Assembly: GCA_002269645.1 (NCBI GenBank)
Contig: NIVC01004649.1
Location: 1-39,408, forward strand
Direction of reading: 5' to 3'
Length of the DNA stretch: 39,408 nt
DNA from: Macrostomum lignano
Taxonomy: Eukaryota
Shown here: positions 1 through 23,318 of the stretch, piece after piece
Position numbering within the stretch: the first letter of the stretch is position 1
Layout: the number at the start of each line of letters is the position of its first letter
Notes under the pieces: generated by a model
Seen by the model: the letters and a program-made list of their open reading frames with translations, nothing else
Told to the model about the DNA's origin: nothing
Databases searched by the model: none
Position numbers and translations under genes: made by a program

Positions 1-529
1 AATATTTCTGCAAGTTTTATTGGACAAAAAACGGAAGAATTTCTCACCATTGTTCATGCTCATAAAAAGAGCAAACTTGCCACCCAGTACTCCAGTGATG
101 CAAGTCTCAATCTATCTTTCATTGGAAGCTGTTGAGCTTCAGTTGGCTGCTTCATCAGTAAGAGAACAATAGGATCCACCCAAAAGATGATGGTCTCAAT
201 ACAGTCTTCCATTTGCACTGAAATTTTCATTTTTAAGTTCCATTTTAACCATCGGGCTTAGGTTTTTGTGAAACTCATGCAAACATCCATTGACGAGAGA
301 CTTACCGCTCTCTCCTTCCTCGCTACCGGCGATGTAGTCGAAGTGCACGGACAGGTACTGATCACGCGGTGCTTGCTCACCTTCCGGCTCGTCCACGGCA
401 TATCGTTTCCGCTTCACTTTGGCGCAGTCTTCACACGGCAAAAGTGGCAGCTCCTGAGATGCTGTGGCAGCCGGATGCTGCGCTGGCTCTTCTTGTGCGG
501 CCGCCTCCGCCAGCTCGCGAGGGTCTCGG

Positions 530-1330
530 GCGTCAAAGACTTGCCTCATCGCGGCGGTAGTCCTCCGAGCCCCTCCAGACTCACGGAGCGCGACAGCCCG
601 TACTGGCTGACACTGAGTCCAGACGGGCCAACGCCAAACGCCCAACAGCGAACTCTACGGGCTGTCGCCTTGGCCTCGAAACTTGCCACGGCAGATGGAG
701 AGAAGCTGCCGAGCCCGGCGTCAGTGAAGACAAGCACGTGCCGCTGGCCCGATGGGTCTCGTAGCAGCAGCTGCAGCAAGCCGTTAGCGCAGGCCCATCC
801 GCACTTGCCGCCTGATTCGGATCAGGGGCCTCGCAGTTTGTCACCGAGCCAAGCAGTCGCGCCTTGTCTGCTGGGCTCCAGCCGACGCCAGCCGTCTTTA
901 CGACACTTACTGACTGCGAGAACGTCACGCAGCATGTGGAGACATGCTGGTGGTCCAGAGCCTCTGCTAGCGATACCAGGCTGTGGAGCAGCATTGGACG
1001 CGACGATACAGTGCTAGATGTGAGGGAGACAGCTATGCCTACAGCAATCCTGCGCTCTGTGACTCTGTGCCTTTGTAGCCAGATTTTGTTGCTAGTGCCA
1101 TTTGTCATGAACCAGTTCATCAGGCCCCTGATGCTCAGCTTCTTGCCTCTGTTTGCCAGATGGTATCGCATCCGCGAGTGCTGGTTGGAAACTTGAATAC
1201 TGCTAATAATCCGGTTGGTGCATGGGTCCACTTTTGCCGCTAATTTCTTCCACATTTCATCCGCTGCATGGATTCCGGTGACATCGCTGAGTTCAGTTAG
1301 GTATCGCCGCATTTCGGGCATACTCAGGTT
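530..1330 (-). CDS. Midasin-type pre-MIDAS segment and VWA domain 2 (frameshifts near 800 and near 550)
   Basis: GKKLSIRGLMNW...KIWLQR...IAVGIAVSLTSS, CCVTFSQSVSVVK, HVLVFTDAG, RCWAFGVG, and LP..AMRQVF (midasin ends LP...LRQWF). Confidence 0.75.
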
Positions 1331-1589
1331 CGCTACTTCACCGGACAGATTTTCGTATTCGTGATATTGCGTCGTTATCTGTTCTTTGTTTAGCCCAAGG
1401 TCGTAGCCTTTATTTTCGCACTCGAGCCACTCTTCCAAAACAACCTGCCGGGGCTCGGGCACGAACTGACCGCATGGGTCTGGCTGGCTTTGCACTACTT
1501 GGGCATTAGCAGCATTGGTAATAAAGGAAAGTTCTTCAGTCTCGGGGCAGCAACGAAAGGGTTTTCTGGTCCGCTCCTTTCAATTCTTC

Positions 1590-2037
1590 CGTATTTCAGA
1601 CACCAGTCCTCTTCAATCCACAAGGCGGAGTAAATTTCACCCGAAAACTGTTGCAGAGAATCCTGGAACAGCTGGGAGCCAAAGCCTCTGTGCTGATCCG
1701 TGATTAAAATCACCCACTGGCAGTCCAATATTTTCGAATCAGTTGCTAGGAGTTCGTCTGAATGACAATGCAGTTTGTGAAACACCTTGCGACAGGTGTG
1801 CGGCATCCAGGGGGTGTTAAAGTCTTTGATCGTTGCCGGTACGTTTGCCAGGGACATGAAGCCTTCGTTGCTGATTTGAACGCTTTTGTCCCCAGTGAGA
1901 ACGATTTGAACTTTGCAGTTGTGCATTTCGGAATGTCTTACAACTCTGAATACAGCACGAGTGAGTTCATTTTCTTTTCGGCCATTGTTTTGCTTTTTCC
2001 ACAGGGAGCATTTTGTATCGATTAAAATGGTACCCTC
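1590..2037 (-). CDS. Degenerate VWA-like domain 1
   Basis: One frame reads EGTILIDTKCSL (DxSxS-like), ELTRAVFRVV, KVQIVLTG, HTCRKVFHKL, WVILITDQ, SQLFQDSLQQF, IYSALWI. This matches the VWA order of strands and helices. Confidence 0.5.
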
Positions 2038-2101
2038 GTTTCCTTTTTAAGATTTGCATCTTTATGAACTCTTGTTTCCTTACTAACGGTGCTGAAGGAA
2101 G

Positions 2102-4399
2102 TCAAATGCTGGACTTGAAACCAATTCGAGGGATCCGCTGTGAAGATAGAAGATTCCTGAGGTGGACGCTGGCTGGTCTTCTGTAAGAGCGTCGCGAGTG
2201 AATTGGAACGTGTGGGTGAGAGATCTCCACAAAAGTACCTGCTGTACTGGCTTCGTTATCTGAGTCGTCTATTCCAGCACTGAACTCTTGCATCCCAACC
2301 TCCAGCTCCGCGTCAACGTTCGATCGCGGACTAAATTTCATAACCCGACCGGTTGCTATTTCTGTCGATATATCTCCGCCAACAGCACCTTCCACTATGC
2401 TGGCATCTGACAGATGACCAAGGTGGCCCCTTAAAGGATCAAAACTGCTATCAGCTGCATCGCTTTCTTCAAAATTGGTTGCTGTCGTAGAGGCAGCACT
2501 GGGTCCTTCTGCAGCTGATGCTGGGTTTCCCTCTTTTTCTATCTTTTGTGCATGCTCTGACATGAAAGTAGAATCTGGCTTGCCCTCAGCCGTTTCTTCC
2601 GGGAACGAATCAGTCGGTATTGGCGCTTTTAGAGCTGCACCAAATGCTTCTGACTTGGCTGTTTCTTCCTGTGCAGAGGCTCCTTTACTCGCTTCTGTTG
2701 GTTTTGTTTCTTCAGTTGATTTTTCATCAGGTTCTGTCGCAGCTTCAGATTCTTCTGCATTCGGAGGTTTCATTTCGCTTTGATCTGTTTCCCTGCTTTC
2801 TTTTCTTTCTTTATCATTGATATCGCTCGTTTGGTTTGTATCACTCGGTGACTTACTTTCGGTATTCTGACCAGCTTGCTTTTCTTTTTCTGTCGGTTCC
2901 GAATCGTTTGGTGCGAAAGTTTCCTCTTCAGTCTGTAGCTGGTCAGTTTCTGATTCTTCTTGCGAATCTTTAGCGGATTCCACATCGCGAGAGGTTTCGT
3001 TCTTGTTCGTTTTCTCAGAATACGACCCCACTTCTCCTTCCTGTTCTCTTTGCTCGGAACGGGATTCTGCTGCCCCGGCTTCTTCTACTGGCTGACTCTG
3101 TTCATCACTAGTTTCCAATGGATCACTATTTGGACTGGATTCAACACATGAAGAGTCACTGTCCTTATGCTCTAAGAGCTCCTCCGCAGAAGACTCATCC
3201 TTGGGTGCCGTCCCGCCAGACTCGCTTCTTTCAGTCCCCGAGCCCGAAGGATCCGCAGACTCTGTCTGGCCAGACCCGCTTTCATTGGTTCCTGAGCCGG
3301 AAGGATCTGTAGACTCTGTCTGTCCAGACCCGCTCTCATTGGTTCCCGAGCCCAGAGGATCTGCAGACTCTGTCTGGCCAGACCCGCTCTCATTGGTTCC
3401 TGAGCCGGAAGGATCTGTAGACTCTGTCTGTCCAGACCCGCTCTTATTGGTTCCCGAGCCCAGAGGATCTGCAGACTCTGTCTGGCCAGACCCATAGCCA
3501 CCAGTCGAGGAGTCTTTTGCCTCCGACTGGCCCATGATTTGCTCGTCGGTCCCCATTGAAGGCGGAGGACTTTCAGTCAGACCGCTCTTCTCTGCATCAG
3601 CAATGGCCTCCTTGGCATTCTGAACTTTGTCCATCCACTTTTTGATTTCTTCTCCTCGCGGTCCAGCCAGGTCACTTTCAGTGGGCTGAGGATCTGAGCC
3701 TCCGCCTTCATCCAGCGAAAATCTATCAGCGTAGCTGTTAGCGATCGCCGACTTTAGCTCCTTTCTTAAATCCTCTTCCTTCGTAGTGGAGCTGAGAGCA
3801 AATCTGAATGCGCCGCTTGCATCTTTGTTGTTGATATTTGCACTATAGGACACAACTGTAGCTGCTTCTGTCCCATCCTCTTTTCCTCCAGAAATCACCA
3901 GTTCTTTCATCGGATTTTTCTCACGACTGTCCAACTCAGCTTATTTCTCGATTTCCTTCTCGTAGGCATCAATGCCGCAAATTGCCGACTGAACAAAGTC
4001 CACCCCTTTTATAATCGCGTGTGTTGCGGCACGAGCAAGCTGCAGAAGTACCTGGCAAAATTGGTAAAAAAGCCACTTGATTCCCGAGTTTGATTCGACC
4101 TTTTCCCTCATCTTCTTGATGCTGTCATCCAGCTTTTGCTCCAATTTCTTGAGAAGTTTTCGAACGCTACTGATTATTTCTTTGATTAATTTCTTTATAC
4201 TGAACGTGCTGTTCAGTCGGATGTCCCAGTCAAGAAATCTCCGCTGGTTCTCTCGTTCACCAAAGTTTAGCATTACTTCGACGGAAATAATTTTGAAGAA
4301 AGTGACCTTAAACCACGCGTAGAAGCACTTTTTGGCGGTGTCTGTCTCTATTTTGGCAGCTACTTCGATAATAAAAAATATGCTCACTTTGACGTCCAT
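2102..4399 (-). CDS. Amphipathic/coiled helices followed by an acidic D/E/S-rich low-complexity tract; in-frame TAA at 3941-3943
   Basis: KKLIKEIISSVRKLLKKLEQKLDDSIKK... is followed by EKEIEK*AELDSREK in one frame. The 610-aa E/S/D/T-rich ORF occupies the position of the midasin D/E-rich region. Confidence 0.75.
3228..3495 (-). repeat. In-frame 54-bp (18-aa) tandem repeat x5: SGSGQTES(A/T)DP(L/S)GSGTNE
   Basis: CAGACCC recurs at 3271, 3325, 3379, 3433 and 3487, a period of 54. Confidence 0.95.
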
Positions 4400-7300
4400 C
4401 AGGAATTTTAGTCCGTTGCTTTGCTCACAACAAGTGCAGCTTTGGCCCCGCCTTGCCGTCGGTGCTGCTCACCTCAAGCAGGTCGAGCAATTTAAGGGCT
4501 CTACGAGCTCACCTCCGAACTCAATCTTCTTATCTTCGCCATGAAAGGTAAAGCCTCCCCATAGTTAGCGTTCATCCGAGCCAGTTGATGGCCGCATCGA
4601 ATTTGACGCACGGTCCAATCTCATATCTTTCCGTTAAGCCTTCCGGGTTGCCTCCGCCTACGTCTTCCGGTGTTCTGACAGCTTTTTCAGTCATTTGCTG
4701 CTGACCGTCAGGACGGACGAAATTTTATTGACTCCATATTTTCATTGGCGGCGAGATAAGAAAAAAAAATGGTTGAAGCCCGGCAGCAAGAAGTCAACGT
4801 GTTCGCAAGACTTCATCAACGCCAAGAAGCTTTAGAAGATTGGAAAACCGCAGGGTCTTCTCTCGTCTTTTGAAATCGGAAGTAAGCCCCTACAGGAACG
4901 ACACGAGTAGGTTAACCAAATCTTTTTTCTTGTCATGAATCTAATGCGAAACTCAATGTCGCTCTCGAACAACTTCATGGCAGCTGCTACTTCAAAGCTT
5001 AATGCGTCTGGCGGAACGGAAATCGAGAGCTGCATCGAAGCGGAGATCAGTGTTAAAAACTTTAGACCAAAGGGCGTTGGCCAGGCCAAGTCATTTCGCC
5101 GGTTATTTTCAAGTACCTGAAATTTCTCGCTTTTTGCCACTGCTTTCGATGCTAAGCCTGCCTGAAAACTCAGCTTTGTGTTTGGCGTTTCCTAAGAATT
5201 CGGTGGGAAGATTTATATTCATCTTGGCGTCCAAGAAAAGCTTGATTATTCCTTGAGTCTTCTTTAATAACTTGCCATCTGCATCAGTCTGCTTTGATGC
5301 CTCTTCAGCTGCTTTAATGTGCACGACTCCGAAGGAGATAAAGAGCGACACGCAACCAAACAGTTCCACCGAGCCGCACTCGATGTCCAAACTAAAGCCG
5401 CTGCTTACAACGCTAAGACAGCCAGAAAAGGTTTTTCCCGTCAAGCTTAGAAAGTCGTACAGCCAATTCTGCGGCATGGTCGCCTTGAATGACAAGACTG
5501 CAAATGGTGTTTGTTTAGTTTTCTTCACGCATTCAGTCACGAAAGTTGAATCGTAGTTCATTAATTGCTTCATTTTATCAGATGCCTCGCTCAGCCTTTC
5601 ACTGCAAATCTGTTCATTCGCTTTTTTAGAGCGCAGAAGCAGCACGAGCTGTAAGTTGTTGAACACTGGGATAAGCTCGATTGATTCGACCACTTCAAGA
5701 CCGTGCCAGATTTCGCTGAGTTTCCCTTCGTATACTACGCACACTAAGTAGAAGAATTCTTTTTTCGGGAATCCACCCGTCATTCCAACCTGAAACCCTT
5801 GTGGATTTCTGCAGGCAATCGCAAACTTCTTTTCCTTTAAGTAAACTTTCACCGCGGCTCCACTTTCTTTCAGGTTGACCTCCCCAATCCGAGCAAGGGC
5901 GCTGCTGAAGCAGCTGTCCAAGGAATCCTGGTCGACAATGCTGCTGGCTTGCAGCTTGCCGTCGGATTCACCGGCATCTGCCGTGAGCTTCGGCTGAGAC
6001 TTCTTCTGAAGTGTCAGCACACCGTTCGGCAGATCCAGCACCATGCCAAGCCGCAGCTTAAACAGGTCAAACAGGCAGAACAGCTTTCCTTTCCCGAATC
6101 GCCGTCCGCAGGCGCCTTGAACGCACCGAGCTCCTCCTCGCTCTGTGGCGTCTGATTAGCTTCATTGGTATTCTTTGCTCTTTCGAGCTTCAACTTTGCT
6201 CCAAGGCAAATAATTTTAAAAGGTTTTATCTGGCCCGTAGTCTCACCAATCACTTCTAATTCGAAAGAATTCAGTGTTCTGTCGGGCTGAATCTTGGCTT
6301 CAAAATGTAAGAGCTTGAATGTCAGATCAATTTTTTTACTTAGAGATTTAACTTGCTCCTCGAGTTTGAATTTCTCGGCAACAATTGCAGCCAAATCTCC
6401 CAGGCTAAAGTCGATCTTTTGTCGAGGAACAACTATGGTCCATGGTTGCTTTATCTCCAGGGGTAGCTCGACCTTGCAGTCTACGATTCGCAGGTGCTTC
6501 ACTTCAGGTCTTCCAAGACAAAATGCGAAGTTCAGAGTCGCAAGCTTGAAACTGCTGTCAAACTTTTTATCGCTGCCCTCTTCGCCATTCGCAGACGCGC
6601 CAGCTATTTCTTGCTGTTTCTTTTCAACTCGAATCTTCAAGTCCTCGAGTCGGAGTAAGGTGCAGTTTGGAATTAGGCAAAGCCGCTGCAGTCCGAGCAC
6701 AAGTACCCAAACATCGGGTTCCACCGCCTTCGTCCAGCTGAAATGAACTCCAACATCCGTAAGTATGAGGCCAAAGTCTGGCAGACTTGTCTTTAGCACA
6801 CGGCCAAACAGCTCGTTCAGTTTGATGTCTTCCGGAAGCCTTGCAGTGCTGCCGGTTCCGTCAAAAGATTCCGGCAATTCCAACAGCCAGCACTGGCGAC
6901 CTTTTTCAGCCGGTCTGTGGAATTTCAGTTTGAGCCTACCCAGTCTAAAATCAGCCAGGGTCAGGTCAGCTGTCAGCTTGAAGTCAGACGTCGCTGAGTT
7001 GGAGTAAGTCCACAAGAAATCGATTTCAACAGATCCCAGCTTCAGTAGACTTGTGAAAGGCAATCTCAGCTCCTTGATTTTTGCCTCAAGTGTCAGTTTA
7101 TGAGTCTGACTCGCGGCGGCTTTGCTTTCTTTACCAGACTCTCCAGCTTCTGATGACCCGGCTTTGATGGAACGGCTTTCTTGGCTGCTCTTCGATGCTC
7201 CAAGCTCTGTCCTGTTCTCGTACCTCACTCTGAGCTTCTCAAATTTCACGAACTTAAGAAGTGGGACGTCAACTAGACTTGAGTTGATCTTCAGCAGTTC

Positions 7301-10264
7301 AGCAAAGGGTTTTATTAGTTCCACCAGAGTAAATTGGGCTTCAATATGAGCATTCAATGTGAACTGCATTGAGTCCTTGTCTCTTTTAACTTCTGACACG
7401 TAATCTAGGATGGGCAGAGTAAGGAATTGGATTTTTCCTTTAAGCGAGACCTGAAAGTGCCTGTCCTGATCGAAACTGGTTACTTTCATGCTGAATTCCG
7501 AATCTGTGAGCTCAATCTTCATCAGGCCTTTCTTCAATTTAATCAAGTCAATTGTCATCGCCAGCTCGCAGGTTTTCTCTTTGAAGTCTAAATAGCCACT
7601 GACGAGCTTGTCAAGATTGGTTCTGACCAGCACTTCTGGTATTGCCTCGGCTGACACTTCGAAATTCTTAGACACAAACGTTTGAAGACTGAAAGTTCCT
7701 GTACCATTTTGACGCGGCAAGACCTTCAACTCGTTGCTGGATGTCAAAACAAATCTCGAGCCATTGTCTTCACATTTTAGTAGAAGCTGACAATCAAGAA
7801 TGTCGAATACGGCATAGAAAGTGCACTTCGTTGGGCTTTCAGTTCTTATCTGCACACAGAAGGCTTTGCCTGCTAAGAGCTTTGAGACTCTGAATGAGTA
7901 GCTCTTGGTCAGAGTTTCTAGTAAGAATCTCTTTAAGCTGTTGTCGAAATTCCACTCGATATCAACAGCTGTTTCGGTAAACTGCATTACTGATGGAACA
8001 CCGTAGTTGGACAGGTCAACACCCCGCCCCATGCATTCTGCCAGCAGGGACACTACGTCAGTACTTGAGTAGTGCGTTTTCAGATCGCACTGACTGACTG
8101 CCCAATGCTGGTCGTTGATGGGGTAGGAGGCGGACAGAGTTGGAGTTTTCAGCTTCGCGCAGTTTCCCAGCTCCAGAACCATTGACAGACTTGGATAGCG
8201 GAGCATTTCGTCAATGAGGGTGTGCACCTCTCCTCTGCTGGTGCTCAGCTCTATTTCTGTAAGAGTCAACATAGGGCTGAGGCTGACGGGCTTCATATTA
8301 AGCATCATTTCTAATTCTTTTGGCTTCGTCCAATCGTTCCACTCCATCGAGTAGTTGCATTTTTCAACCATGACTCCTCTAGTGGCTTCATTCTCTCGCG
8401 ACAGCCGGCTCGCTACAAGTACAGAAAGGTCGAACGGCTCAATAGATTTGTCATCGGTTTGTAGCTTCCAACAAGTTCTTTTTTCTGCATTCCTATCCGC
8501 TGTCTGACACTGCAACTTGTTCTCATGCTCACACAGTAGAATGCTGAAGTGTCCTAAGTTCTGTCCGTGCAGAATGAGATCTCCCTCAATCAGGCTGCCG
8601 CACCATTTCTGATGCGCGGCCTTCCTTCCATGGTTCCGCAACACCATGCTGACTGACCGCAGCACAAGCTGGCTATCAACCTCGGAGTGAATGTCAGAAG
8701 AAGCTTTTGCTGTTAACTTTAGTTTCCATTTTGATATGTCAATGCGAATTTCCACTCCGCTGATTGGCACATTCGGGAACGGCTGCTGCACCTCCAAGTT
8801 CATGTCCTTCATTAGCTTGAGCAAGAGGCTTCCTCCATCATCTTTCGCCTGACTGGAAGAACAAAGCGTTAGTTGCAGCTGCTTGGACTTACCGGCCCCT
8901 GTTTCTTGTGCTCGTGTTATTTTTAAATCAAACTCGATGCCTAAAAGCGACAGCAGATCCATCTTTCCTTTTATGCGCACGACCATGTCCGACGGCTCCT
9001 TGCCCTCGATGACCAGCTGGGCCTCGTAAAACTGCATACTCGCTGTGTATTGATTCTGCATCTCGAATTTGGAGATTTGCGCTTCCATGCTGACTTGGCC
9101 TGATGAGTCAACCCGAAAGCTCTCCACACGATTGATCTGAGACTTTTCTGACAAGCCTGCCACCTCCTCGTCGGAGGCTTTGAAGATTTGCTTGATAAAC
9201 ATACGAAGATTAACTTTTTTCGTTTCCGCTATCTTCGATTGAAACTGAAGTTCGGCGATAATATCCGATGAAACTCTCGCGAGCTTGATGCCGAACATGC
9301 TCAAAACTCCCTTCACCTTGCACTTCCAATGCCCACTCGACTCGTGAAGATGCAGCTCTACTTCCCCTATGCTGAAAGGAAAATTTCGATTAGGTAGTTC
9401 GAGCGCTCGGTTTTCTGGCGCACTTATTATGACTCGCGCATCAGACTGCTGCTCTTTGATTTCCATGCTTTGTACCGATAAAGTCAAGACCTGCTTAGCA
9501 GAAAACCAACTTATGAAGGCCAGCGACTCAGGGACCTCTTCCAAGCAAAAAGAGATTATGCTGATTATCTTTGTGCTGCACTCAGCCTCAAAAGGGTCGA
9601 TTTTTAGCAGCGTTTGCGACATGTCGATTGTTCCTTTAAAAGTACTTTTCTTTTTTGATTCCTTAACCTGCATCTTGCCCGTTAGTAAAACAGTTTTCGT
9701 GTGTTGAATTTCCAGTTGAACGTCTTCGAAACTGAACAACTTGAAAGCCGGCCATCCATAATTGATTTTTTCATCGAAAGTCAGCTTAAAGAAGTTCGAG
9801 TCTTCAACCGCAGCAATCATAATTCTGTTGCATATTTCTTTTGCTCTTTCGTTCCAATATGGAATTTTGGTGGGCAGAAAATTTCTGAAAATAAAAACAT
9901 CGCTCGGTTTCAAGAGTTTGATTTGAAAGAAATCATCTCCCGAGGAGTTGGACTGAAGGCTGAGGTCGACCTCGTTTCCTTTTCTTGTATCTCCTGAGCT
10001 AAGCACAGCTTTTAGTTTGGCAGAGAAAACTCGCCTCTCCATATCAATAGAGAGTTTTCCGTGCAGATCCGACATCTTTACTTGGATTCCAAGAAACCGA
10101 TGGCAGTCAGCTGACTCTACAGCAAAACTGATATTTGCGAAGTCTTTTGAGCCACGGAGTAACAGTTTGTACCGCTGAGCTACCAATTGAAACTCATTGG
10201 TTTTGCTGCTTCCAATTTTGAATCTGGTATTGTGATAACACTCGCTTATTGCTCTAGTTAAATC
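4400..10264 (-). CDS. About 1,900-aa beta-strand-rich repetitive region of the giant protein (frameshifted near 6090, near 5120 and repeatedly in 4400-4930)
   Basis: ORFs of 1417, 311 and 102 aa show alternating hydrophobic/polar strands punctuated by short helices (VNLRMFIKQIF, FSLQTFVSKNF, FTLVELIKPF, IKLNELFGRVL, FSLGDLAAIV). It is in frame with the upstream part once the 950-bp insertion is removed. Confidence 0.7.
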
Positions 10265-11214
10265 CAATGGAGAGTTTACTACTTCTGTTTGCTACTTCTG
10301 GGTCAACTCCAGTGTTTTCCAAAATGAAGTTCTGGCCATCAGCTCCTGCACTGCAGAGCTTCTCGCCACTGGCGTTACTGGTAAGAACATCATTTTCCAT
10401 TCGGACAGCCAAGCTGCCTTGCACGCCATCAGTGGCTGCAGCACCAACTCTGCTACAGTCCTTGACTGTATCAAACTCCTCAATGTGTTGGGTTCCGCCA
10501 ACAAAATTACCCTTAAGTGGGTTCCGGGGCATGTGGGGATCCGAGGAAATGAGTTGGCTGACACCCTTGCAAAAGTTGGTGCCTCCGGCTCCTCTCTCGG
10601 CCCCGAACCTCTTGTCCCGATCCCTGGCTGTGTCATCGACTCGCGCATCAAAGCGTGGATCAGGACTCAGCACCGCTCGACTTGGGCGAACCGCACGAAC
10701 TGCAGGCAATCCAGAGGCGCTGTCCCTCAGCCCTCTCACCAGCTCCGGAAGCTCCTCTTGCGCCTCTCGCGCAGAGACATCCGGGCTGCCACCATGACCC
10801 TCTCTGGTCACGGCTGCTTCTCCAGGCACCAGTACCTGCAGGGCAACGCCACCAACGCCACCTGTAGTTTCTGCAACTCAGGTGACGAAACCGCTGAGCA
10901 TTTCGTCAGCATCTGTCCCGCCTTCACGCGGGCCAGACTCACTTACCTCGGGCCACACACATCTATTACTGAAGCGTGCAAACCCGAAAACTTTAATCAG
11001 CTCATGCGCTACCTTCGGGCCACCCGCAGGGCTGAACTCTCCTTTCCAGAGAGCACCATAGCTGCTGGCGACACTGGGGGACCTCCCTGGGCGGCGCCAA
11101 CCCTCCGTCCATAGCGACGCGTCGGCCGTTCAGGGACTAGCGGAATGGGCGCCCGCGCCTTCCCGCTGTGTCCCCTCCGGGACAGCCCTGCAGCTAAGTC
11201 AAGTAAGTCAAGTC
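10265..11214 (+). mobile_element. 5'-truncated non-LTR retrotransposon (LOA/R1/I-like clades): RNase H, CCHC knuckle, 3' UTR and (TAAGTCAAG)2 tail
   Basis: An open frame from ~10260 to 11114 reads SVFQNEVLAI...FHSDSQAAL...LKWVPGHVGIRGNELADTLAK (non-LTR RNase HI) and LSGHG...CSFCNSGDETAEHFVSIC (CX2CX8HX4C). It is GC-richer than its flanks. Deleting these 950 bp restores the host frame EKEQTDLTRAISEC. Confidence 0.9.
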
Positions 11215-13248
11215 TGTTTGCTCTTTTTCATTGCTAGAAAGATGAACTGGAATGTTTCCCTCCGCAAAGAGACCAATTCTAGCCTTGAATTCCCACATCG
11301 GCTTTCCTTTCTTTACTGTCATACTGAAGTTGCTGTCCGCGAAGTAAACATTTGCACTTTCACCGCTACCGTCTTTCAGCTGGTACTCTATGAGCTCGGG
11401 ATCCGAGATAGCAGTAGTTCTGCAGAGGAACTGGTTGAACTTCAATGATTTCACTACACTTGGCCCATCGAAATGTCTCAAAAATTTTGTAGGAACAGCA
11501 TTCTCCAAGCCAACACTTCCTTGTTCCAAATGAATATTAACAACAATGTTAGACCCACCGTATGAGCAGCAGAATTCCCAACTGAAATTAAGTGCTTCCT
11601 TTTCATTACTGGTAAGGTCACCGACTACTTTCCACAGGAAGTCTCCAGCCTTATTGTTGCAAAGCAAGTGCCGACACTTCAGTTCACTCTCGAATGGCAA
11701 AAGTATGTTGGTAATAGCAGGCTGAAAGTGTTCGGAGTGGGACAGCTTCACTTTTGCATGAGCCTCTGGATCCCTCTGCAGTCGGCTGATGGCACAGCCC
11801 ATGCTGCTGGTTACGCTCTGGATTTCATCGCCTACAAATTGGACAAGAGCTCTCTCTGCAGACTTCGACTTGCATTTCATTAAGACGATAATATCCATTA
11901 GCTTTCTGTCATGAATTGCCTCAACTTTTTGAACGGATTTTAAATTGAATCTGGGCGAGAGAATTCGTCCAGACATGTAGTACTCCTCTTTGTACTTCAA
12001 CGACTTCGACATCATTTCGCCCACCTGACATCTCAGCGTCTCATCAAAAATGTCTTCCATGAGACTCGACGCATCAAGCAGCATTCCATTTTCAATAAAA
12101 AATAAAATGTGTCTCAGATCTCTTGCGGTCACTTGCTCCCTTTTTGCCTTTTCTGACGTTTTAAAATTGTTGATGAGACGTCGAACGATGGAAGCAATTT
12201 CGTTGTTGCATAGAGTTCCATCTCTTAGCGGCGCGAACAGGTCAGGAAAGCAGTCCGTTTGCGGATCCAACTTGGGACAGAAAATCTCAATGCAGCGGTT
12301 GCGGAAAGATTCAGACAGCTGAAAGCTGCTACTTCTACCGATTGTTGCTGTGCAGATGAGAGCAAATCCAGGTTTCGGATCGATTCCGCCCTTCGGTCCG
12401 TCAGTGAGAGCCACTTCATGGACGTACAATCGCTGGCCCGACTCGCCAATGGAATTGAGCCTCTCGATCACCTCTGGTCTCGCGTGGTCAACATTGTCCA
12501 GCAGGATCCAGTTACCATTCTTCATCGACTTTACTAGAGGCCCGTCAACAAACTGAAAGCTGTTTTTGGAGCCACTGCTGACCGGGGAGAAGCCGCCAAT
12601 GAGGTCGCAGACGTCAGTATCAGCATGAACCGCAACAGTGACCAGCTGCTTGCTGCACCGCCGAGCCAGCTCCGCAACTGCGCTGCTCTTTCCGGAAACT
12701 GGAGGTCCCAGTAGAAGTAAGATTTTACCACTTCCAATCGATTGTTGCAGGAGACGCACGAGTCTGTCGGACGCGTCGCAAGGATTCAGCCTCTGACTTG
12801 AGTGTAAGAAGTCCCCGCGGCTGGTAAAAGCTCTCTTAGCTGTTTCTTCTGGAGACTCGCAAACAGCTAGTTTGCTTATCAGCTCCTGGGTTTCGGAACT
12901 ACTGGAAGAACTACATTCGCAGTATACAATACCAAGAGCTTCTTTCACAGTGTTATGCGCGTTCAACAAGCCGACAACCTTTTCTACATCTCTAAGGTTG
13001 AATTTACGATCAAAGTGGCCAGACGGGCATGCGTGATCTTTACAGCTAGCAACCATTTGCCAGTGAAATGAAGCCACTGCTTCAGTATTCGGACCAAATT
13101 CATTTCGAAACTTTTCGATTATTTCTTGCGTCTCTTTCTCTCCGATGACGTCCACGCTTACCTCCGTTAGCAGCTTTGACAGAGCTGGCGGCAGCTCCTG
13201 GCGTCCTCCGCCAGAACTTGCCGGGTTCATCGCGCACACAAACTGCAG
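11215..13248 (-). CDS. Start of the very large last exon: end of AAA5, AAA6 and post-ring segment, cut by a retroelement
   Basis: LQFVCAMNPASSGGGRQELPPAL resembles the midasin ATMNP motif. AAA6 has GPPVSGKS, FQFVDGPLVKSMKNGNWILLDNVD and SFRNRC. The ORF stops at 11194, inside the retroelement tail. Confidence 0.85.
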
Positions 13249-13386
13249 CTGCAATGCGACATGTTATAGAGAACAGAGTTTTACAGATTACACTTGACTA
13301 AACTTTCTGTATACAACTAGGAAACCCTAATGATGAATAACTCAATTTTCTATAATTTCAACAGCGTTGTGTCAATTGCTTCTTAC

Positions 13387-13451
13387 CTTTTTCAGGGAAT
13401 ATTCCTTAGAGTTCACAACCATCTTTGTGCCTTTAGGATGCTTCATGATCC
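13387..13451 (-). CDS. 65-nt exon within AAA5 (GIMKHPKGTKMVVNSKEYSLKK)
   Basis: Acceptor ttattttAG| at 13452 and donor AAG|GTAAG at 13387/13386. Phases 1 and 0 fit both neighbouring exons. The next acceptor is ttgcAG| at 13249. Confidence 0.75.
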
Positions 13452-13540
13452 CTAAAATAATTTCAGAGAACACTGGCAATCAAGCAAATGACATAAAACG
13501 ATAAAATGTACTTCTATTAAAAGCGATTTGTTCTGCTTAC

Positions 13541-16500
13541 CAATAATTGTGCTCAGAACATTGCTGGGAGCCAAATTAATTTCGTCGAATAAAATAACGG
13601 CTCCTTGATATTCATCGGGACTTTTCGGTTTTCTGCCCGCCATTCGAGCAGAGTCGGCCACTGCTGCCTGCTCCAGAATTGCACCCTCTCTGAATTGAAA
13701 CGTCATTTTGGTAGCTTTAGTTCCCGAATTCGAGTGCGCCGTTGGAACAAATGACCCAAATAGGTCTTCTTGAGAAAGATCACTAGAGCAGGAAATTCTG
13801 ATGAACTTCTTTTTGAGAACCGATTCTGCAAATATCCTCGTGATTTGGGTCTTGCCAACTCCCGGAGGTCCAACGAGGTTGACCACTGATTCAGTGTAAT
13901 GAGCAATTAGCAAGTGGCTAAGTACTTCTTTTGCCCGTCGGGTTACTGTCAGATCCTGACCCACTCTTTGAAACTCCTGTTCTGAGAATAGCGATGCTTC
14001 AGACAGAATTTCGTTTGGACTGTCACTTTGTGGAAATTCCTGCTTCAGGGCGAGACTAAAAGGTGATTTGCAACATTTTGGAGGAATTTTTGCAAATGAT
14101 GCCATGTTGACTAGGCTCTTCACACTCAGAATTCCATTTGAGAGTTTCAAGGCTTCGCTAAGGCCACGGTCGATGTCTTCCGACAAAGAGGAAGGGATAG
14201 ACGATTCTCTGCTCAGGATATCCCGAAAGAAGACTTCAGCCTCGCTGCCTCTGCTCACATCTGTCAGCTGAGGATCTCGCACATGAATCACTGTGTACCG
14301 CGACCTCATTGAGGGCGAGATGTCTTTGTCCGTTGGCAAAGAGATTGTGGCTATTAGTTTAAAGTTCACGCTCAAAGCGATCGGAGCATCAAACTGATGA
14401 GGATGAGTAAAGCTGGGCTCTAACTCGGTCACGCTGTTGAGGCACTCAATAACTGCCTGATCAGCAAGGTTAATGTCTCTCAGGAAGGCAATTCCACCGA
14501 AGCGAATATTTCTCATGATTCCCCTCTCACAGAAAGGAAAAATCTGAGATCCCGATGAGCAAAGGGACAAGTTTTGCAATGTTTCATGCGCGAACGCTGC
14601 ATCAGAGAGGAGGCATTGCTGAGGACAGCCGATAAAATCAGCTGAGTGCTGCTTCAGTATGTCGCAAAACTGACTTGACTTGCAGCTCTTCCATCTCTCT
14701 ACTGCAGGTGATTGCTTGAATGGGGCTGGTAGTTCGTTTGTAAGTCGATTTCTAAGCTTGGAGCAAGTGCTTTCGAAGTACGATGTGCATTTACTGAAGC
14801 TCTTTGCCTTGCTCGGATACCGCGTCATCAGCAACTGTGCAGCTGGATTGGCGCAAGTCTCTTCGAAGGACTCCGCTGAGTGCGGCTCGATCCCGCCAAA
14901 CAGATCTCGGGTCTCGGTTAGATCCGACATGTACAAAGTAGTCAGTCTGCAAAGCTCAGGAGCACCAAAGTCTACGATTTGAGTCAGGTGGCGCACCATC
15001 GTTGCTTTAAAATTCGTCCGGCCTTCGAGCACCACGGGCTCAGCGAAGTGGAGCGCCAGTGCAAGCTTGCAAAGGCTCAGCTGTTCGCTCCTTATCATGG
15101 GCTGCGGAAGGCTTTTCTGCAGCGCTTTCAGCTTCACAGACACAGTTGCCGACACAGCTGCATCTCGAAAGAAAATTTCAAAGAGCCAATCGTTTTCGAC
15201 GCATTCAATTTTGCAGTCCAAAACTGCTGCTTGAGGTGGAAATAGGTCCATCAAAACGGCAACGTGTAGCTTCACCTTTTCCAGCCAATTTTCTGCGCTC
15301 AAATCTTCCGTAATGGTGAGTCGTCTCACAAGCTTTAAAAGAGTTCTCAAGGTTGTTGAGTTCGATTGGTTGTGGTGACCCTGCAAATATTTAACAAGCT
15401 CTTGGATTCGAGTTCTCATCTCCGAGCTTGATAGCTCGCTACTAAAGAGATTTTTTGCCACATTTTTCATGAATGACCTTGCTCCGTGGTATAGTCCTGA
15501 TAGACTTTTTATTTCGCTGCTGGGTTTGTTCTGCTTCATCGAGTCTGCAAAACATGCTACTTTTCCGTAGAGGATGTCGACGATCTCATCGCGAGTGTAA
15601 TCTGGCACCGAGTACTTCACCAGTCTGGCCAGCACAGGTTCTGGAAGGCACTGTCTTCCAACATATTCTGTCGGATTTTGCGTACCCACAAAGGCAAACT
15701 CCGGGTGAACATCAAGCCATTGTTGTCGAATCGAGCAACGAAATTTGCTGCCACCGCTCAGAAGAGGCGTCAGATAGCTCGTGACTTCGGGCGATGCCAA
15801 ATTAAGCTCGTCCGCAATAAATATGCTTCCTTCTCTCATGGCCTTGCTCAGCGGCCCTTCTTTGAACTTGGCCTTCGTTCCATCAGGCAGATAGCAGCCC
15901 ATTAGGTCAGTAACAACTGTGTCCTTGTTGAACAGAAATATAACTGGCCTGGCCGCATAGCCTAAATGATTGCTCACTAGCTTTACAAGCGATGTTTTGC
16001 CTACTCCGGAGTGCCCTTCCAGCAGCACGGGAATCTTCATTCTGAGGAGAACCATTAACAGGCCAGCCAGTTTCTGTCGAGACTCCCCAAGAGTGTACAC
16101 TGGACTGTCAAGAATAACATTCTGTGTCCATTCGTGTTTGCATTCTACGGACGACTCAAGCACTAATTCTGCAATGCTTTCAACTACTTGAAACCAGTCA
16201 TAAAGAGAATAATTTTTGCCATCTAAAGCGATAGGCTTCTTGGCCAAGTAATTGGTTCCGTTTACGAATTGGGCTATCTTCCCGATCGAGGCGTAAATCA
16301 GTTTACATTTTATCGTCGAATCTTGTTCGCGCATCGGCAAGTGACGGAACATCAAGTCCAGAATTCTTCGAGCATTGTTTCTGCTCATTCGATTCGCGAT
16401 AAAGGATTCGACATCCGAGCTCAATATGTTTTCCGGCACGTCAAATATGACGAAGCGACTGAGGAACGACTGGGCCCAACTCGAATAGTTCGTTCTGACG

Positions 16501-16719
16501 CTGCTGACTGAATGTGGCGAGCACAAAGAAGCTTGGATCAACCGGCACCATCTTGCCGTCAATTAGATAGCGGCGCTCTGGCCCTGTCTCCAATAGTGCG
16601 TTCAGAGACTCCAAGACTGCCTTTTCTACCAAGTTAATCGACCTGAGTACCAGGCATTTTCCCTCTTTGATAGCTCGAGCTACTGGTCCGTCAACCCATT
16701 GGAATACGGCTCCTGAATC
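13541..16719 (-). CDS. Exon: rest of AAA2, AAA3, AAA4 (with insert), most of AAA5; one +1 frameshift near 16475
   Basis: AAA3: GHSGVGKT and FIADELNLA. AAA4: GRTNFKAT and FLRDINLA. AAA5: GPPGVGKT and ILFDEINLA. Removing one base from TTGGGCCC (16472-16477) joins FVLATFSQQRQNELFEL to (A/G)QSFLSRF. The exon ends at donor G|GTAAG (13541/13540). Confidence 0.85.
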
Positions 16720-16819
16720 CTAAAATGCAACATCAAAAATGATGTCAAAGATAAAAAGATAAGGTACTCGTACATGAGTTTTCGAGAGCTACGGTAAATA
16801 AATAAGTACAAAAGCTCAC
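16720..16819 (-). other. 100-bp phase-0 GT-AG intron
   Basis: GTGAG...ttgcattttAG. Splicing gives GQFQPQ|DSGAVFQWVDGPVARAIKEG, which matches the MoxR/midasin F.W.DGP motif. Confidence 0.85.
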
Positions 16820-19411
16820 CTGGGGCTGAAACTGTCCCACCAGATCATCAGTTGATGTTTCAGAATGGCAATAGTATTCCTCAAGTTCGATGTTTCTCTT
16901 CTTTGCCCAAATCCAAATGGCGGTGAATTTTCCCGAGAAGCTTTCCCCGACCAGCATGCCGGGCCTCTTCGTGTCATGACAGAGATCAAGATACTCCATA
17001 GTGTCGCTGTAGGTGCTGAGTACTGCCACTTCGCCAATTCTCAGGTCGGATAGATTTTGGGACACCTGCTTGGGTCCGAATTCCATTTGCAAACTTTCTT
17101 GAACAAGCGTATGAGTTTCTTCAGCTTGCGAAGCAGTATTTTCGCTGTGCCGAGAAAAAAGACACATGAGCCGGTTTGTCACTTCCTCGGGCTTAGAATT
17201 GATAATAATGTCTTGAGCATGCAGCAAATCTCGAAGAGTAACATGCAGTTTATCTTTGAACTTCCTGTAGATTGAAATCAGTTTATCGGCCATTTGAGTA
17301 TTGCCGTCTGAGCATCTGCCTTTTAATATTTTTTCGACATCATCATCAGGCAGCTTTGAAAAAGTTAAGCGGACAAAGTGGCTCATAAGAGACTTTGAGA
17401 AACGAAGACTGTCGAATCCAAAAACAACGACATTCGAATTTTGACAAAGGAAAAGGCGAAAGTTCGGGTGGCGTCGGTAGCACAGACATCCATTCTCCGC
17501 ATCTGACTGGCCGGCGATGAGGCTGTCCCGAATTTGCAGCATCCCTGTGTCCAGAACGTCCTCCAAAACCCGCAAAACAGCGTCACTCGCCAGATTGGCC
17601 TCGTCCAACAGAAGCCAATAGCCGTCCCTGACTGCTCGGGTAAAGATGCCTGGCTCGAACCGGAACTGCGATCCGGATCCCGAACCAGCGAATCGAACAC
17701 TCCCGAGTAGGTCTGCCGCGCTGGTGTGTGGTGACAGGGTAAATCGCAGCAGCGGGGCGCCGGAGATGGCAGCGCAATACCGAACTGAGAACGTCTTTCC
17801 TGTGGCTGGTTCGCCTTCAATAAAGACGGGCATGTTGGAGTTGATCAGCAGTAATAGGCGCTCAACATTTTCTTTGGTCCGGTCAGTAAATACGAAGTTC
17901 ATTGTTTCGTGGCTCTCAACCGCTTGTTTCATGCTTTCTGAAATTTCCGATGGAACACTTTCTAGACTTTGTCTTGGCAGTCTTATTCGCAAGTGATCGT
18001 CGAAGAGCTCCTCAACTTCTAGCTCTCTATTTTCGTGGATACTCAGAAAGAGCTCCTGTACAAAATAATTTTCTTGAGGTAGCTTTCCTTGGAGTTTCAA
18101 ATGCTTCGTAAGCTTCTCGTGGCTGAACTCAGACATCAGAGTATCCATGTACTTTTTGTCACTCCTTTTCCCTGCTTTGATGAATGGCAGAAATCTGTTT
18201 TTGTCTTTATTTGCTTTAGTTTGTTGTTGCTTTTTCGCAGTCGGCTGTGTAATACCAACAGGTGTGGGTAGCGGTCGACTAGACCTCACGCTCCACCTAT
18301 TGCTTTTGCTTTTCTTAGCCACCTGCTGCTCCAGAACAGTCACCTTTTGATCCACTGAGCCTATGATAATGTCAAGACATCGCGCGTCCAACACCTCATC
18401 TGGCAAAGCGACCTCATCGGAATCTTGCTTTAACTTCCGGATCTGAATCACTGACTCTTCGGATGGGTTCACCAAATAGTAGGCGTTCTCGAGAGGATCC
18501 GTGGCCAGCCTTATTGGAGCATCGAGTGCTGCTTCACCGGCCTGAGTGACGTCCCAGTCAACAGACAGAGCAATCACATCGGTCGCGGTTAAGCTGTCGA
18601 CAATACAGCCCTCGGCTTTGAAAATGGCATCGATTCGGTCACTCTGGTGACCAAGCCGGGCGGTGCATAACTTCCAAACCCGCTGATGCAGAACGACCAT
18701 GCGAAGGAGAAGCTCATCATTCAAGTTAACAAAGACAGCGCCTTTAACATCCGATCGACAATAGATGGTTGGAGTTTGTTCTTTCAGGGGTACTAGATAG
18801 AATTGCATTCGGTTCGAACTGTCCTTAGCAAATATTGTGGCGAAATCGGAATTCTCTGAAACCTGATAGTGAAGCACCGATCTCAGGCTCAACTTGTGCT
18901 CTAATCGAAGGTCATGCTGGTCGAAACCAGCTTGATTGTTCTTGTAAACCCTGATTCCAGCCCAGTGGTGAATCAGAGTGCTTTCGGTTACTACAGCAAA
19001 AACATCGGTGCTAAGCCACACTAGCTTTAGCGCTTTCTCAGCCTGCAACGAGTGCACAGCAACGGGAGACCATGGTGAGCTCGAGGCAAAGTCGAATACT
19101 AGTACTCGATCGGCAGAGTTTCTTCGAACCACAACCGCAAGCCTCGAAGTCGTATCGTTCGGTACGGTGTGAACAATGGCGTCATTGCCACACTCGGGTA
19201 TGACGAATCGGCGAAGCGTGTAAGATTCCGGGTCAAAGACAGTCGTGCAGTTCACTTCAGAGCCCTTCAGTCCCAGAATATCCGGTAAACTGTACGAACT
19301 GTGGATAACGGCCGAAGTCTTCGTGAAGAACACATCGTGCAGTTTATAGTTCTTGTCAGGACCGACCACGTCAAGTCTGAAGGGGAAGTTATCCCCTTCC
19401 ATGCCTGAGAG
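16820..19411 (-). CDS. Exon: clathrin-terminal-domain-like propeller, AAA1, and the start of AAA2
   Basis: AAA1 has Walker A GEPATGKT, FRFEPGIFTRAVRDG and Walker B WLLLDEANL. AAA2 has Walker A GESFSGKF and STDDLVGQFQPQ. The exon ends at donor CAG|GTGAG (16820/16819). Confidence 0.85.
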
Positions 19412-19585
19412 CTGGGGAATAAAAGGAGCATTTTCGGGTTTCGCTTCTTGCTGCGCAATTTACGATCAAAATTCTATCAAATCAGAAATTCAGTCAATGC
19501 AGCGAAACTGTGGAAATGTTAAGAGCCTTATTATCCGAAACTAGAGCTAGTTAATTAATTGATGGGTAAGCAGCAAGATGACTTC

Positions 19586-20580
19586 ACTTCATCCCAGGTC
19601 ACTGCACCCCATCCCAGGTCACTGCACCCTATTCCAGATCACTGCACTCCATTCCAGATCACTGCACCCCATCCCAGGTCACTGCACCCCATTCCAGATC
19701 ACTGCACCCCATCCCAGGTCACTGCACCCCATCCCAGGTCACTGCACCCCATTCCAGATCACTGCACTCCATTCCAGGTCACTGCACTCCATTCCAGGTC
19801 ACTGCACCCCATCCCAGATCACTGCACCCCATTCCAGGTCACTGCACCCCATCCCAGGTCACTGCACCCCATCCCAGATCACTGCACCCCATCCCAGGTC
19901 ACTGCACCCCATCCCAGATCACTGCACCCCATTCCAGGTCACTGCACCCCATCCCAGGTCACTGCACCCCATCCCAGGTCACTACACCCCATCCCAGGTC
20001 ACTGCACCCCATCCCAGATCACTGCACCCCATTCCAGGTCACTGCACCCCATCCCAGGTCACTGCACCCCATCCCAGGTCACTGCACCCCATCCCAGATC
20101 ACTGCACCCCATTCCAGGTCACTGCACCCCATTCCAGGTCACTGCACCCCATCCCAGGTCACTGCACCCGATCCCAGGTCACTGCACCCCATCCCAGGTC
20201 ACTGCACCCCATCCAGGTCACTGCACCCCATCCAGGTCACTGCACCCCATCCCAGGTCACTGCACCCCATCCCAGATCACTGCACCCCATCCAGGTCACT
20301 GCACCCCATCCAGGTCACTGCACCCCATCCCAGACTGCACCCCATCACCAGGTCACTGCACCCCATCCCACCACCATTCCAGGTCACTGCACCCCATCAC
20401 TCAGATCACTGCACCCCATCAGGTCTGCACCCCATTCACTGCAGGCAGTCTGCACCCCATCCCAGATCACTGCACCCCAATCCCAGTTCACTGCACCCCA
20501 ATCTCATGTCACTGCACCCCATCCCAGGTCATTGTGCCCCAATCCCAGTTCACTGCAACCCATCTCAGGTCACTGCACCT
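19586..20580. repeat. 20-bp minisatellite (ATCCCAGGTCACTGCACCCC), ~50 copies, degenerating rightwards
   Basis: Direct reading. Variants ATTCC, CAGATC and CACTCC occur, and units shorten to 19 bp or become irregular after ~20200. There are no spacers. Confidence 0.97.
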
Positions 20581-21159
20581 AGACATTTCTACGTATCTAC
20601 GAGCGTATCTATCCCAATAAGCAAACCCACCTAGATCCATTCTGCAATCTGCAGTCACACCCATATCGAAAGTGCAACCTGCAGAACCACTCAGATCCAA
20701 GCTGCAAAAATCTCAAACCAGCTTACCTCGGCCTCGACTTATGACCAATCTTAGTTGAAGTCTTGGTTGTGTCAGATAAAAGTACTAAATGAATATACCA
20801 GTAAATTTATAGAATTTATTAAAAAGTAGGTAAACTGCGTTTGAGATTGGCAGACTTAATTTTTGTTTTCTTCTATTTCTAAGTTTCTAATCTATGATAG
20901 CTAATTTAGTGCAGTAAAATTCCAGACTTTTGTTAATTAAACAAATTTATATAGGCTGAAGATGGTACCGTTTACCCAGACAGGGGTAGGGGGGCAGTTA
21001 CGAGTGCATGAAACGTATTCGCTACTTGTGCATGCTGCAGTCTTTAATGCACAATAGTCTACAACTGCACTGCTATTGTACGGTGCTTCGAGACGCACAG
21101 GTGGTGTGTAATTAATCCCAACCTCTAAAGCTGCCGCTGCCCTGGAAAGAGAGTCTCAC

Positions 21160-21267
21160 CTTGGACTTTACTTTCGTATTCCACTGCAGTACTATAGAAA
21201 GGGAACTTTGCTTGGTTATGTTCAAGGTACCAGCAATGAATTTTGTCATCATTTGAGGGAACTTCAT
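21160..21267 (-). CDS. Candidate first coding exon (MKFPQMMTKFIAGTLNITKQSSLSIVLQWNTKVKSK, 36 aa)
   Basis: ATG at 21267 has A at -3 and an in-frame TAA four codons upstream. The exon is exactly 108 nt and ends at a strong donor AAG|GTGAG. Phase 0 fits the acceptor cttttattccccAG| at 19412, giving ...KSK|LSGMEGDNF in frame. Confidence 0.5.
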
Positions 21268-23281: not shown

Positions 23282-23318
23282 TAGGGACTGCAATCCCGGG
23301 ATCCCGAAATCCCGGGAC
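23282..23318. mobile_element. Solo terminal fragment of a TAG-ended (hAT-like) element
   Basis: TAGGGACTGCAATCCCGGGATCCCGAAATCCCGGGAC resembles the TAG terminus and ATCCCG-rich subterminal motifs of the 35862 MITE. No partner end was found. Confidence 0.3.

Follow-up and report, generated by a model that had tools for sequence, protein, structure and literature searches.

The window analysed here is a stretch of 39,408 nucleotides, the contig NIVC01004649.1 of the flatworm Macrostomum lignano (assembly GCA_002269645.1). Between positions 19402 and 196 it carries, on the minus strand, a giant gene that resembles midasin (MDN1, Rea1). The gene is assigned, with a probability of about 0.7, to a distinct and unnamed midasin-related family, as a single-chain AAA+ protein of about 5,991 amino acids (aa). 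An earlier note on this DNA had proposed that the product is not a plain MDN1 orthologue and that it keeps a ring and a tethered end domain while its linker and N-terminus are replaced. This proposal is mostly supported, because the AAA modules pair off-diagonally with those of midasin, the Walker B residues "DE" occur in AAA1, AAA3 and AAA5, the DxSxS motif of the last domain is lost, and the same layout is found in an annelid, Owenia fusiformis.

Gene model and exon structure

All long open segments from 196 to about 19460 lie on the minus strand, and a coding sequence (CDS) of 17,976 nt, or 5,991 codons in four exons, could be reconstructed from them, in agreement with the single giant protein of about 6,000 aa that had been predicted. 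This CDS is a hybrid of the window and a sister copy of the locus (L001), in which the frame-keeping variant was picked at each insertion or deletion (indel) between the two. The gene and its exons are as follows.

19402..196, minus strand: giant midasin-like gene
16820..19402, minus strand: exon 1, aa 1-861; N-terminal domain, AAA1 and start of AAA2; donor CAG/GTGAGC (the stroke marks the splice border)
13541..16719, minus strand: exon 2, aa 862-1921; rest of AAA2, AAA3, AAA4 and first part of AAA5
13387..13451, minus strand: exon 3, a 65-nt micro-exon within AAA5 (GIMKHPKGTKMVVNSKEYSLKK); GT-AG boundaries; present in protein P0020
196..13248, minus strand: exon 4, about 13 kb; end of AAA5 through AAA6, post-ring parts and tail; stop codon at 198-196

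The start codon at 19402 (MEGDNFPF...) is shared by the UniProt model A0A1I8JC40 and by the alignment to a divergent M. lignano paralogue (L003). A0A1I8JC40, a M. lignano protein of 1,604 aa, is also the best database match of a 1,036-aa AAA segment of the gene (98% identity). The introns are only three in number, short and of the GT-AG type, at 16819-16720 (100 nt), 13540-13452 (89 nt) and 13386-13249 (138 nt), and exon 4 of the hybrid is a single open frame save for one TAA. An interpretation of the other frame changes as introns was rejected, since beyond these three all of them are indels relative to the sister copy. What had been described as hand-splicing was mostly frame repair of a damaged copy, whose disrupted state had gone unmentioned, and only the three GT-AG introns stand as true splicing. 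Of the span of 196-21267 given for the gene, the 3' end is retained. The 5' limit lies too far upstream because positions 19590-20579 are a minisatellite and homology starts at the Met at 19402, so that the extension to 21267 was rejected and the CDS begins at 19402. The minisatellite, which also yields spurious plus-strand open reading frames (ORFs) of 334-353 aa, lies directly upstream of the gene start.

19590-20579: minisatellite with a 20-bp unit (CATCCCAGGTCACTGCACCC) in about 50 copies

State of the window copy

The sister copy L001, which is contig NIVC01004179.1 of the same assembly, is 98.4-99.1% identical to the window across the whole gene (19 kb). Between the window and L001 there are 170 substitutions and 35 indel events; the indels are nearly all single-base and their sites differ between the copies. 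L001 is free of the lesions of the window copy but has ten frame-breaking deletions of its own. Three features of the window copy stand out.

10294..11222, plus strand: 929-bp 5'-truncated retroelement of the type without long terminal repeats (non-LTR), antisense within a coding exon; 9-bp target-site duplication (GCAAACAGA, gene strand)
3941..3943, minus strand: in-frame TAA where the helices give way to the acidic tract, found in the window copy only
4414..5112, minus strand: deletion-rich patch with 14 small deletions relative to L001; 2.0% mismatches (other bins 0-2.3%)

The terminal part of RNase H (Pfam RNase_H PF00075, E=8e-7) is matched by the plus-strand ORF of the insertion, which is therefore a 5'-truncated non-LTR retroelement with an RNase H end, a Cys/His tail and an (AAGTC)-like 3' tail. 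L001 and protein P0020 lack it and read across the site. The TAA, which belongs to a cluster of five substitutions, corresponds to GAG in the sister copy. In addition, an extra G near 16477 shifts the frame of exon 2, where L001 lacks the base and reads through; a 7-nt duplication is found at about 4720; and about 20 small deletions are present, including the 14 within 5112-4414.

Such damage could mean that the window copy is a pseudogene, a dead duplicate without a product, for which the odds are considered somewhat less than even. The retroelement with its target-site duplication inside an exon, the in-frame TAA created by substitutions and the more than 20 frame-breaking indels are consistent with this explanation, as is the multi-copy genome of M. 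lignano, which is polyploid and holds several copies of most genome regions. On the other hand, the ratio of nonsynonymous to synonymous change (pN/pS) between the window and L001 is low, namely 0.31 overall and 0.15-0.30 in the folded parts (AAA 0.16, β region 0.30, C-terminus 0.15), so that any decay of the window copy would be very recent. Over the 5,991-codon CDS the gene has evolved under purifying selection, and the low ratio points to such selection along the entire folded length, the orphan middle included. The acidic tract evolves without constraint (pN/pS 1.10). Furthermore, the substitution rate in the deletion-rich patch is normal, and the sister copy carries different 1-nt deletions, a pattern expected from long-read assembly errors. 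Most of the 1-nt indels therefore look like assembly errors, and the patch is probably a low-quality stretch of the assembly, whereas for the retroelement and the TAA a genuine lesion is the more probable explanation. The window copy would thus be either a dying allele or homeologue or, in part, poorly assembled, and it may have been disabled only recently. The pseudogene explanation touches this copy alone, not the family to which the gene is assigned.

AAA modules and their relation to midasin

Six consecutive AAA_5-type modules, with midasin as the nearest relative, occupy aa ~495-2350 of the chain. They were located by Walker motifs that are conserved in three family members.

17920-17033, minus strand: AAA1, in exon 1; Pfam AAA_5 E=1.3e-14
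Exons 1-2, minus strand: AAA2 (degenerate), spanning the first intron
16121-15132, minus strand: AAA3, in exon 2
15131-13992, minus strand: AAA4 (degenerate, with a long insert), in exon 2
Exons 2-4, minus strand: AAA5, including micro-exon 3
12819-12025, minus strand: AAA6, in exon 4

Matches to Pfam AAA_5 fall on AAA1, AAA3 and AAA6, with AAA5 covered by a second AAA_5/AAA match. Exon 2 scores 3.1e-35 against Pfam AAA_5 and, in a search of the PDB, 2.6e-58 against Rea1/Midasin, followed by CbbQ and NorQ at about 1e-10. Self-matches aside, the AAA exon retrieved from the databases only midasins and bacterial multi-AAA_5 proteins (25-37% identity). The six midasin-like modules that had been read from the sequence are borne out by these matches and by the Walker motifs.

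The close relation to midasin raises the question of whether the gene is simply a fast-evolving M. lignano orthologue of MDN1 that still acts in 60S maturation, many flatworm genes being fast-evolving. Midasin is the best and nearly sole match for the ring, the order of parts agrees (N-terminal domain, six AAA modules, long middle, acidic tract and MIDAS-like end), the end domain is homologous to MIDAS, and no separate MDN1 is shown here. Such orthology is nevertheless highly improbable, given that neither the ATP-site pattern nor the modules themselves correspond. In the reconstructed model, the paralogue and Owenia alike, AAA1, AAA3 and AAA5 combine GxxxxGK[TS] with a Walker B "DE"; AAA2 has GK[FLY] and lacks an acidic Walker B; AAA4 has FKAT/FKST and "RD"; and AAA6 keeps Walker A but has "DN/DG" in place of Walker B. 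The insert of AAA4, of about 120 aa, lies between Walker A and Walker B. In contrast, the canonical midasins P0003 and P0004 show "DE" in AAA2-5, "ED" in AAA1 and "EN" in AAA6; the midasin combination of Walker A and "DE" throughout AAA2-AAA5 is not found in the family, whose pattern is shifted to AAA1/3/5. When compared module by module with canonical midasin by the Smith-Waterman method, the modules score 100-240 and pair off the diagonal (m1 with c3/c5, m2 with c4, m4 with c2), with no one-to-one correspondence of AAA1-6, whereas modules of canonical midasins from different, distant organisms pair strictly on the diagonal at 340-930. None of the midasin lid families of Pfam was matched in the M. 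lignano protein.

N-terminal domain and β-rich region

Pfam and NCBIfam scans of the N-terminus, the β region, the helices, the C-terminus and the Owenia protein gave no matches. The parts on either side of the AAA modules are the following.

19402-17963, minus strand: N-terminal domain, aa 1 to about 480; a fold without match, conserved in paralogue L003
10285-4485, minus strand: β-rich orphan region, aa 2621-4560, about 1,940 aa
8617-7895, minus strand: copy 1 (weaker) of a ~300-aa repeat unit, R, found by jackhmmer
7108-6161, minus strand: copy 2 of repeat unit R, found by jackhmmer
6110..7468, minus strand: modelled β module, aa 3560-4012, 453 aa; AlphaFold2 (AF2) predicted local distance difference test (pLDDT) 69.4, predicted template modelling score (pTM) 0.62

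The N-terminal domain aligns from Met1 to paralogue L003. It has no match in the PDB either, and no internal repeats appear in an hhalign self-comparison; the N-terminal propeller that had been suggested is thus not confirmed. A clathrin-like propeller was dropped as a candidate, the match being limited to a 22-residue motif that resembles a blade of the clathrin terminal domain (hhalign E=0.0024, probability 12%).

The orphan region of aa 2621-4560 likewise lacks a sequence match in the PDB, and the Rea1 linker has no sequence match in it. In place of the mainly helical linker of about 1,700 aa that follows the ring of midasin, aa 3560-4012 are all-β in the AF2 model, which was computed from a six-sequence alignment and consists of more than 20 long antiparallel strands of 8-15 residues with few short helices. 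The swap of the linker for an orphan region with a β-meander module is a further argument against MDN1 orthology. The all-β assignment holds at useful confidence for this one module of about 450 aa and rests on a low-confidence model for the remainder of the region; a single-sequence AF2 run on 1,200 aa of it reached a pLDDT of 31.7 and was unusable. Read in this way, the β-rich region of about 1,900 aa that had been recognized is upheld, as a region without family match in which one modelled module is a β-meander. This protein and that of Owenia have two copies each of unit R; the paralogue has five, and P0023 has one.

The Foldseek comparison of the β module with the PDB gave nothing meaningful (best E=0.011, TM <=0.2). 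Outer-membrane barrels and ApoB-100 ranked highest, and the first 50 entries included nothing of the VPS13/ATG2 type. No membrane-traffic or bridge-like lipid-transfer family of Pfam matched the β region. The membrane-traffic-like modules that had been invoked for the N-terminus and linker therefore find no support, the clathrin-like signal being confined to the 22 residues mentioned above.

When 1,200 aa of the β region were scanned with HMMER against 1.84 billion representative proteins, four proteins only were recovered: P0020, which is the near-identical sister copy; M. lignano BOX15_Mlig028342g1 (28% identity, 5.8e-63); O. fusiformis A0A8S4PQW1 (3,952 aa, 24% identity, 1e-40); and a 688-aa fragment on a 2.1-kb contig in the bin of a Kangiellaceae metagenome-assembled genome (MAG). 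A word-indexed search with the β exon returned only a 55-aa overlap with P0020, and a profile search with the family alignment A1 gave no matches. The post-ring stretch that is best conserved between flatworm and annelid lies at 5153-4247 (aa 4335-4640), just before the helices, and contains the motifs AWPTPFGL.FLT, GPC.KFD....W.GV....WGGF and EFGG....PLK.L.

Acidic tract and C-terminal domains

The remainder of the protein comprises helices, an acidic tract with tandem repeats and two conserved C-terminal domains of α/β-like appearance.

4246-3932, minus strand: heptad-like helices, aa 4641-4745, judged by eye
3931-2177, minus strand: acidic tract, Ser/Glu-rich and of low complexity, aa 4746-5330, about 580 aa
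3215..3493, minus strand: 54-nt (18-aa) tandem repeats in the acidic tract, 5.2 copies, GSGQTESxDPxGSGTNES
2045-1549, minus strand: VWA-like domain 1, aa ~5375-5540, with alternating strand-like motifs
517..1297, minus strand: MIDAS-like domain with a midasin-type N-terminal extension (GKKLSIRGLMNWF..NKIWLQR), aa 5625-5885

The tract is net acidic and of low complexity, as had been described (S 15.7%, E 14.4%, D+E 21.5%, K+R 8.9%), and thus provides the D/E-rich stretch that precedes the last domain of midasin, though below the acidity usually quoted for MDN1. For the end of the protein, a VWA domain followed by a pre-MIDAS segment and a second VWA domain had been proposed, of which the last domain and its extension hold up and the first VWA domain is not confirmed. 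Neither C-terminal domain matches Pfam VWA even at E<=10. VWA-like domain 1 shows only conserved strand-like motifs (ILID, VLTG and W.ILITD), and the last domain is tied to VWA solely via its homology to the MIDAS domain. This homology emerged when the domain was aligned specifically with the C-terminus of a canonical midasin, taken from a Logan contig (L005), at E=4e-7 in BLASTP and at E=1.3e-4 with a probability of 53% in hhalign. The alignment pairs GKKLSIRGLMNWF..NKIWLQR with midasin GKRLNMRKLIPYI..DKIWLRR and continues through the first strand and helix; the midasin-specific stretch in common is GK[RK]L[NS][IM]R..[IM]..[YW][IF]......KIWL[RQ]R. The MIDAS-like domain is 42.9% identical to that of Owenia. 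At the DxSxS position, however, the residues are AVSLT in M. lignano and VIALT in Owenia, so that the metal-ion-dependent adhesion site itself is lost from the last domain in both flatworm and annelid. Since Rea1 uses this site for Ytm1/Rsa4, its loss also argues against a conserved MDN1 function.

Family members in flatworm and annelid

The family as delimited here consists of the window gene, Mlig028342g1 and Owenia A0A8S4PQW1 together with its upstream neighbour. They agree in colinearity, the AAA1/3/5 active-site pattern, unit R, the acidic tract, an end without the MIDAS motif and intron positions. In the Owenia locus L002 (CAIIXF020000010.1, 1-21406), a 2,544-aa AAA_5-rich model ends 48 bp before A0A8S4PQW1. 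By tblastn the locus is colinear with the M. lignano gene from AAA1 to the MIDAS-like domain at 23-43% identity (AAA1 40.6%; AAA2-5 34.7%, E=1e-164; AAA6 matched; β/helix/acidic region E=2e-138); the comparison starts at AAA1 because the N-terminal domain of Owenia lies beyond the start of L002. All three M. lignano intron positions are identical in Owenia (...QPQ/GT, ...I(I or L)G/GT and AG/.QF.CA). Judged from the colinearity and these shared introns, the family is old and common to flatworm and annelid. Owenia is a slowly evolving annelid, and its possession of the same derived features counts against the notion of a rapidly diverging flatworm MDN1. L002 includes an exon that stays open over 11.5 kb (3,832 codons). 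In the 3,952-aa model, the 3' portion with PBZ-like zinc-finger exons, which reaches to 35052, may be a downstream gene that was fused by mistake.

A search for paralogues, which had been suggested as a check, was rewarded by the M. lignano locus L003 (NIVC01000300.1). It has the same domain order, N-terminal domain included, with 32% identity over aa 1-860 and 38% over AAA2-5. M. lignano thus has two members that are about 30-38% identical to each other, which again speaks against a single MDN1 orthologue. At 13496-25969, L003 contains five near-identical tandem copies of a ~510-aa β module, which either arose by amplification very recently or are an artefact of the assembly.

The Owenia annotation bears on a further possibility, namely that the region holds two adjacent genes, one for an AAA_5 ATPase and the other for a β/VWA protein, whose products are separate polypeptides as in bacterial MoxR-VWA pairs. 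The two Owenia models (2,544 and 3,952 aa, 48 bp apart) are separated by a stop and a frame change, and the M. lignano database models P0001 and P0020 end near the same border. A division into two genes is nonetheless very unlikely. The Owenia break, at about 9911-9950, amounts to a single stop/frame change inside colinear homologous sequence, and both M. lignano copies have an uninterrupted open frame from AAA5 via AAA6 into the β region. The hybrid frame covers about 4,070 codons up to its end and is broken by a single stop, which is specific to one copy, and in the paralogue the ORF 9896-17416 of L003 spans AAA6 and the β region.

The fourth match of the β-region scan, L004 (JAZBNS010000684.1, "Kangiellaceae" MAG GCA_036350755.1), encodes 688 aa of this region and shares 25-37% identity with the animal sequences. 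No relatives turned up when the bacterial and archaeal genomes of GTDB and the metagenomes of JGI were scanned for patterns; the 2.1-kb contig is therefore most likely mis-binned host or animal DNA, and it points to a third marine animal that carries the family. A bacterial origin or contamination was rejected on the same grounds, the "Kangiellaceae" match being a lone contig. Database names of the members are generic ("AAA_5 domain-containing protein", "unnamed protein product"), and a literature search found no description of such a family.

The distribution and variability of the family could also suggest an NTPase of innate immunity or biological conflict, with a logic like that of MoxR-VWA-beta-propeller systems or RNF213, rather than a housekeeping remodeller. 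The patchy, lineage-specific distribution, the deeply divergent paralogues with a five-fold tandem β module in one of them, the unconstrained tether and matches to PF20030 (bpMoxR) are compatible with such a role. These matches are weak and below the Pfam threshold, however; effector, sensor and signalling domains were not recognized in the Pfam and NCBIfam scans, and the five near-identical repeats could stem from the assembly. An immune role is thus improbable.

Proposed mechanism and significance

Several points weigh against the assignment to a distinct midasin-related family. Both assembled copies are non-intact, so the 5,991-aa ORF had to be reconstructed on the assumption that the indels are errors, and a copy with a retroelement and a nonsense codon may give no full-length protein. 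The Owenia locus is annotated as two genes with a frame change between them. In a PDB-wide sequence search, the C-terminus of M. lignano reached the midasin MIDAS domain at E=1.2 only, and the Owenia C-terminus and a two-sequence profile gave noise matches only. Finally, ring formation, ATPase activity, tethering and the pulling of a substrate are features that we infer by analogy with Rea1.

A possible mechanism was nevertheless proposed for a protein of this distinct family. The six modules may form a ring, as in midasin/Rea1. ATP turnover at the three alternating sites, AAA1, AAA3 and AAA5, could move the long β arm that follows the ring, and the C-terminal domain on its flexible acidic tether may hold a protein partner. 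The machine would then pull or remodel the partner so held. Because the metal site is gone and both the linker and the N-terminus differ, the partner is probably something other than the UBL-domain pre-60S assembly factors that MDN1 removes. The action on coats, membranes or microbes that had been put forward is pure speculation.

Midasin is regarded as a unique, single-purpose motor, encoded by one essential gene per eukaryote and devoted to 60S assembly. A second lineage of ancient conservation, as represented by the present family, would show that the design of a ring plus a tethered adaptor was put to a different use in animals. It offers a natural experiment on which parts of the Rea1 mechanism are essential and on how a six-module ring could run on three alternating sites. 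A bolder hypothesis, which is doubtful at present, holds that spiralians keep, beside MDN1, a second giant midasin-type motor with three alternating ATP sites, an amphipathic β-sheet arm of about 1,900 aa and a metal-free grip, which would act outside the ribosome, for example on a membrane or lipid surface, a coat or an invading microbe. If true, it would constitute a new class of cellular mechanoenzyme. The family is invisible to orthology pipelines because its members are split, truncated or unnamed in the Macrostomum and Owenia annotations. A functional test is feasible, since M. lignano is tractable by RNAi and transgenesis.

Other features of the window

On the plus strand, the window also holds a probable neighbouring gene.

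26878-28275, plus strand: 465-aa ORF, proline-rich, with a C2H2 zinc finger (Pfam zf-met/zf-C2H2)

Its motif FNCPANLASHKRWH recalls INSM1/nerfin-type factors. A 21-bp tandem array of 24 copies at 30035-30541 produces long repetitive ORFs on both strands, and a very AT-rich block at 34000-38000 has 28-31% GC, compared with 45-56% in the rest of the window.

Comparison with known systems

Among known systems, midasin/MDN1/Rea1 is the closest in layout: a single chain of similar size with six AAA_5-type modules, then a long post-ring region, an acidic low-complexity tract and a MIDAS-homologous end. The differences are distributed along the entire chain. Whereas midasin has its Walker B "DE" in AAA2-5 and a helical linker, the present family has it in AAA1/3/5 and carries an orphan region of about 1,900 aa with a β-meander in the modelled module. 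Its N-terminal domain is unrelated to that of midasin, its tract is Ser/Glu-rich with just 21.5% D+E, an extra VWA-like domain precedes the last one, and the DxSxS motif is lost.

RNF213 and dynein are alike by analogy only, in that six AAA modules lie on one giant polypeptide; there is no sequence or fold link, and no E3 ligase, microtubule-binding or stalk feature was detected in the Pfam scans. VWA8 is an animal mitochondrial protein with AAA_5 modules and a C-terminal VWA domain. It differs in its size of about 1,900 aa and in having neither an acidic tether nor a β-rich region, and it was absent among the matches of the database searches with the AAA exon and the β region.

The MoxR-class AAA+ proteins (CbbQ/NorQ, bacterial multi-AAA_5 proteins and MoxR-VWA-beta-propeller systems) share the AAA_5/AAA_3 module type, and a bacterial multi-AAA_5 protein of Omnitrophica scores per module about equally to eukaryotic midasin. 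No bacterial relatives of the β region or the C-terminal domains were found in the HMMER scan and the pattern scans. In function, the MoxR-VWA systems follow the same logic as the family, with an ATPase that works together with a VWA-type adaptor; in contrast to these, the corresponding parts of the present family are fused in one eukaryotic, intron-containing gene.

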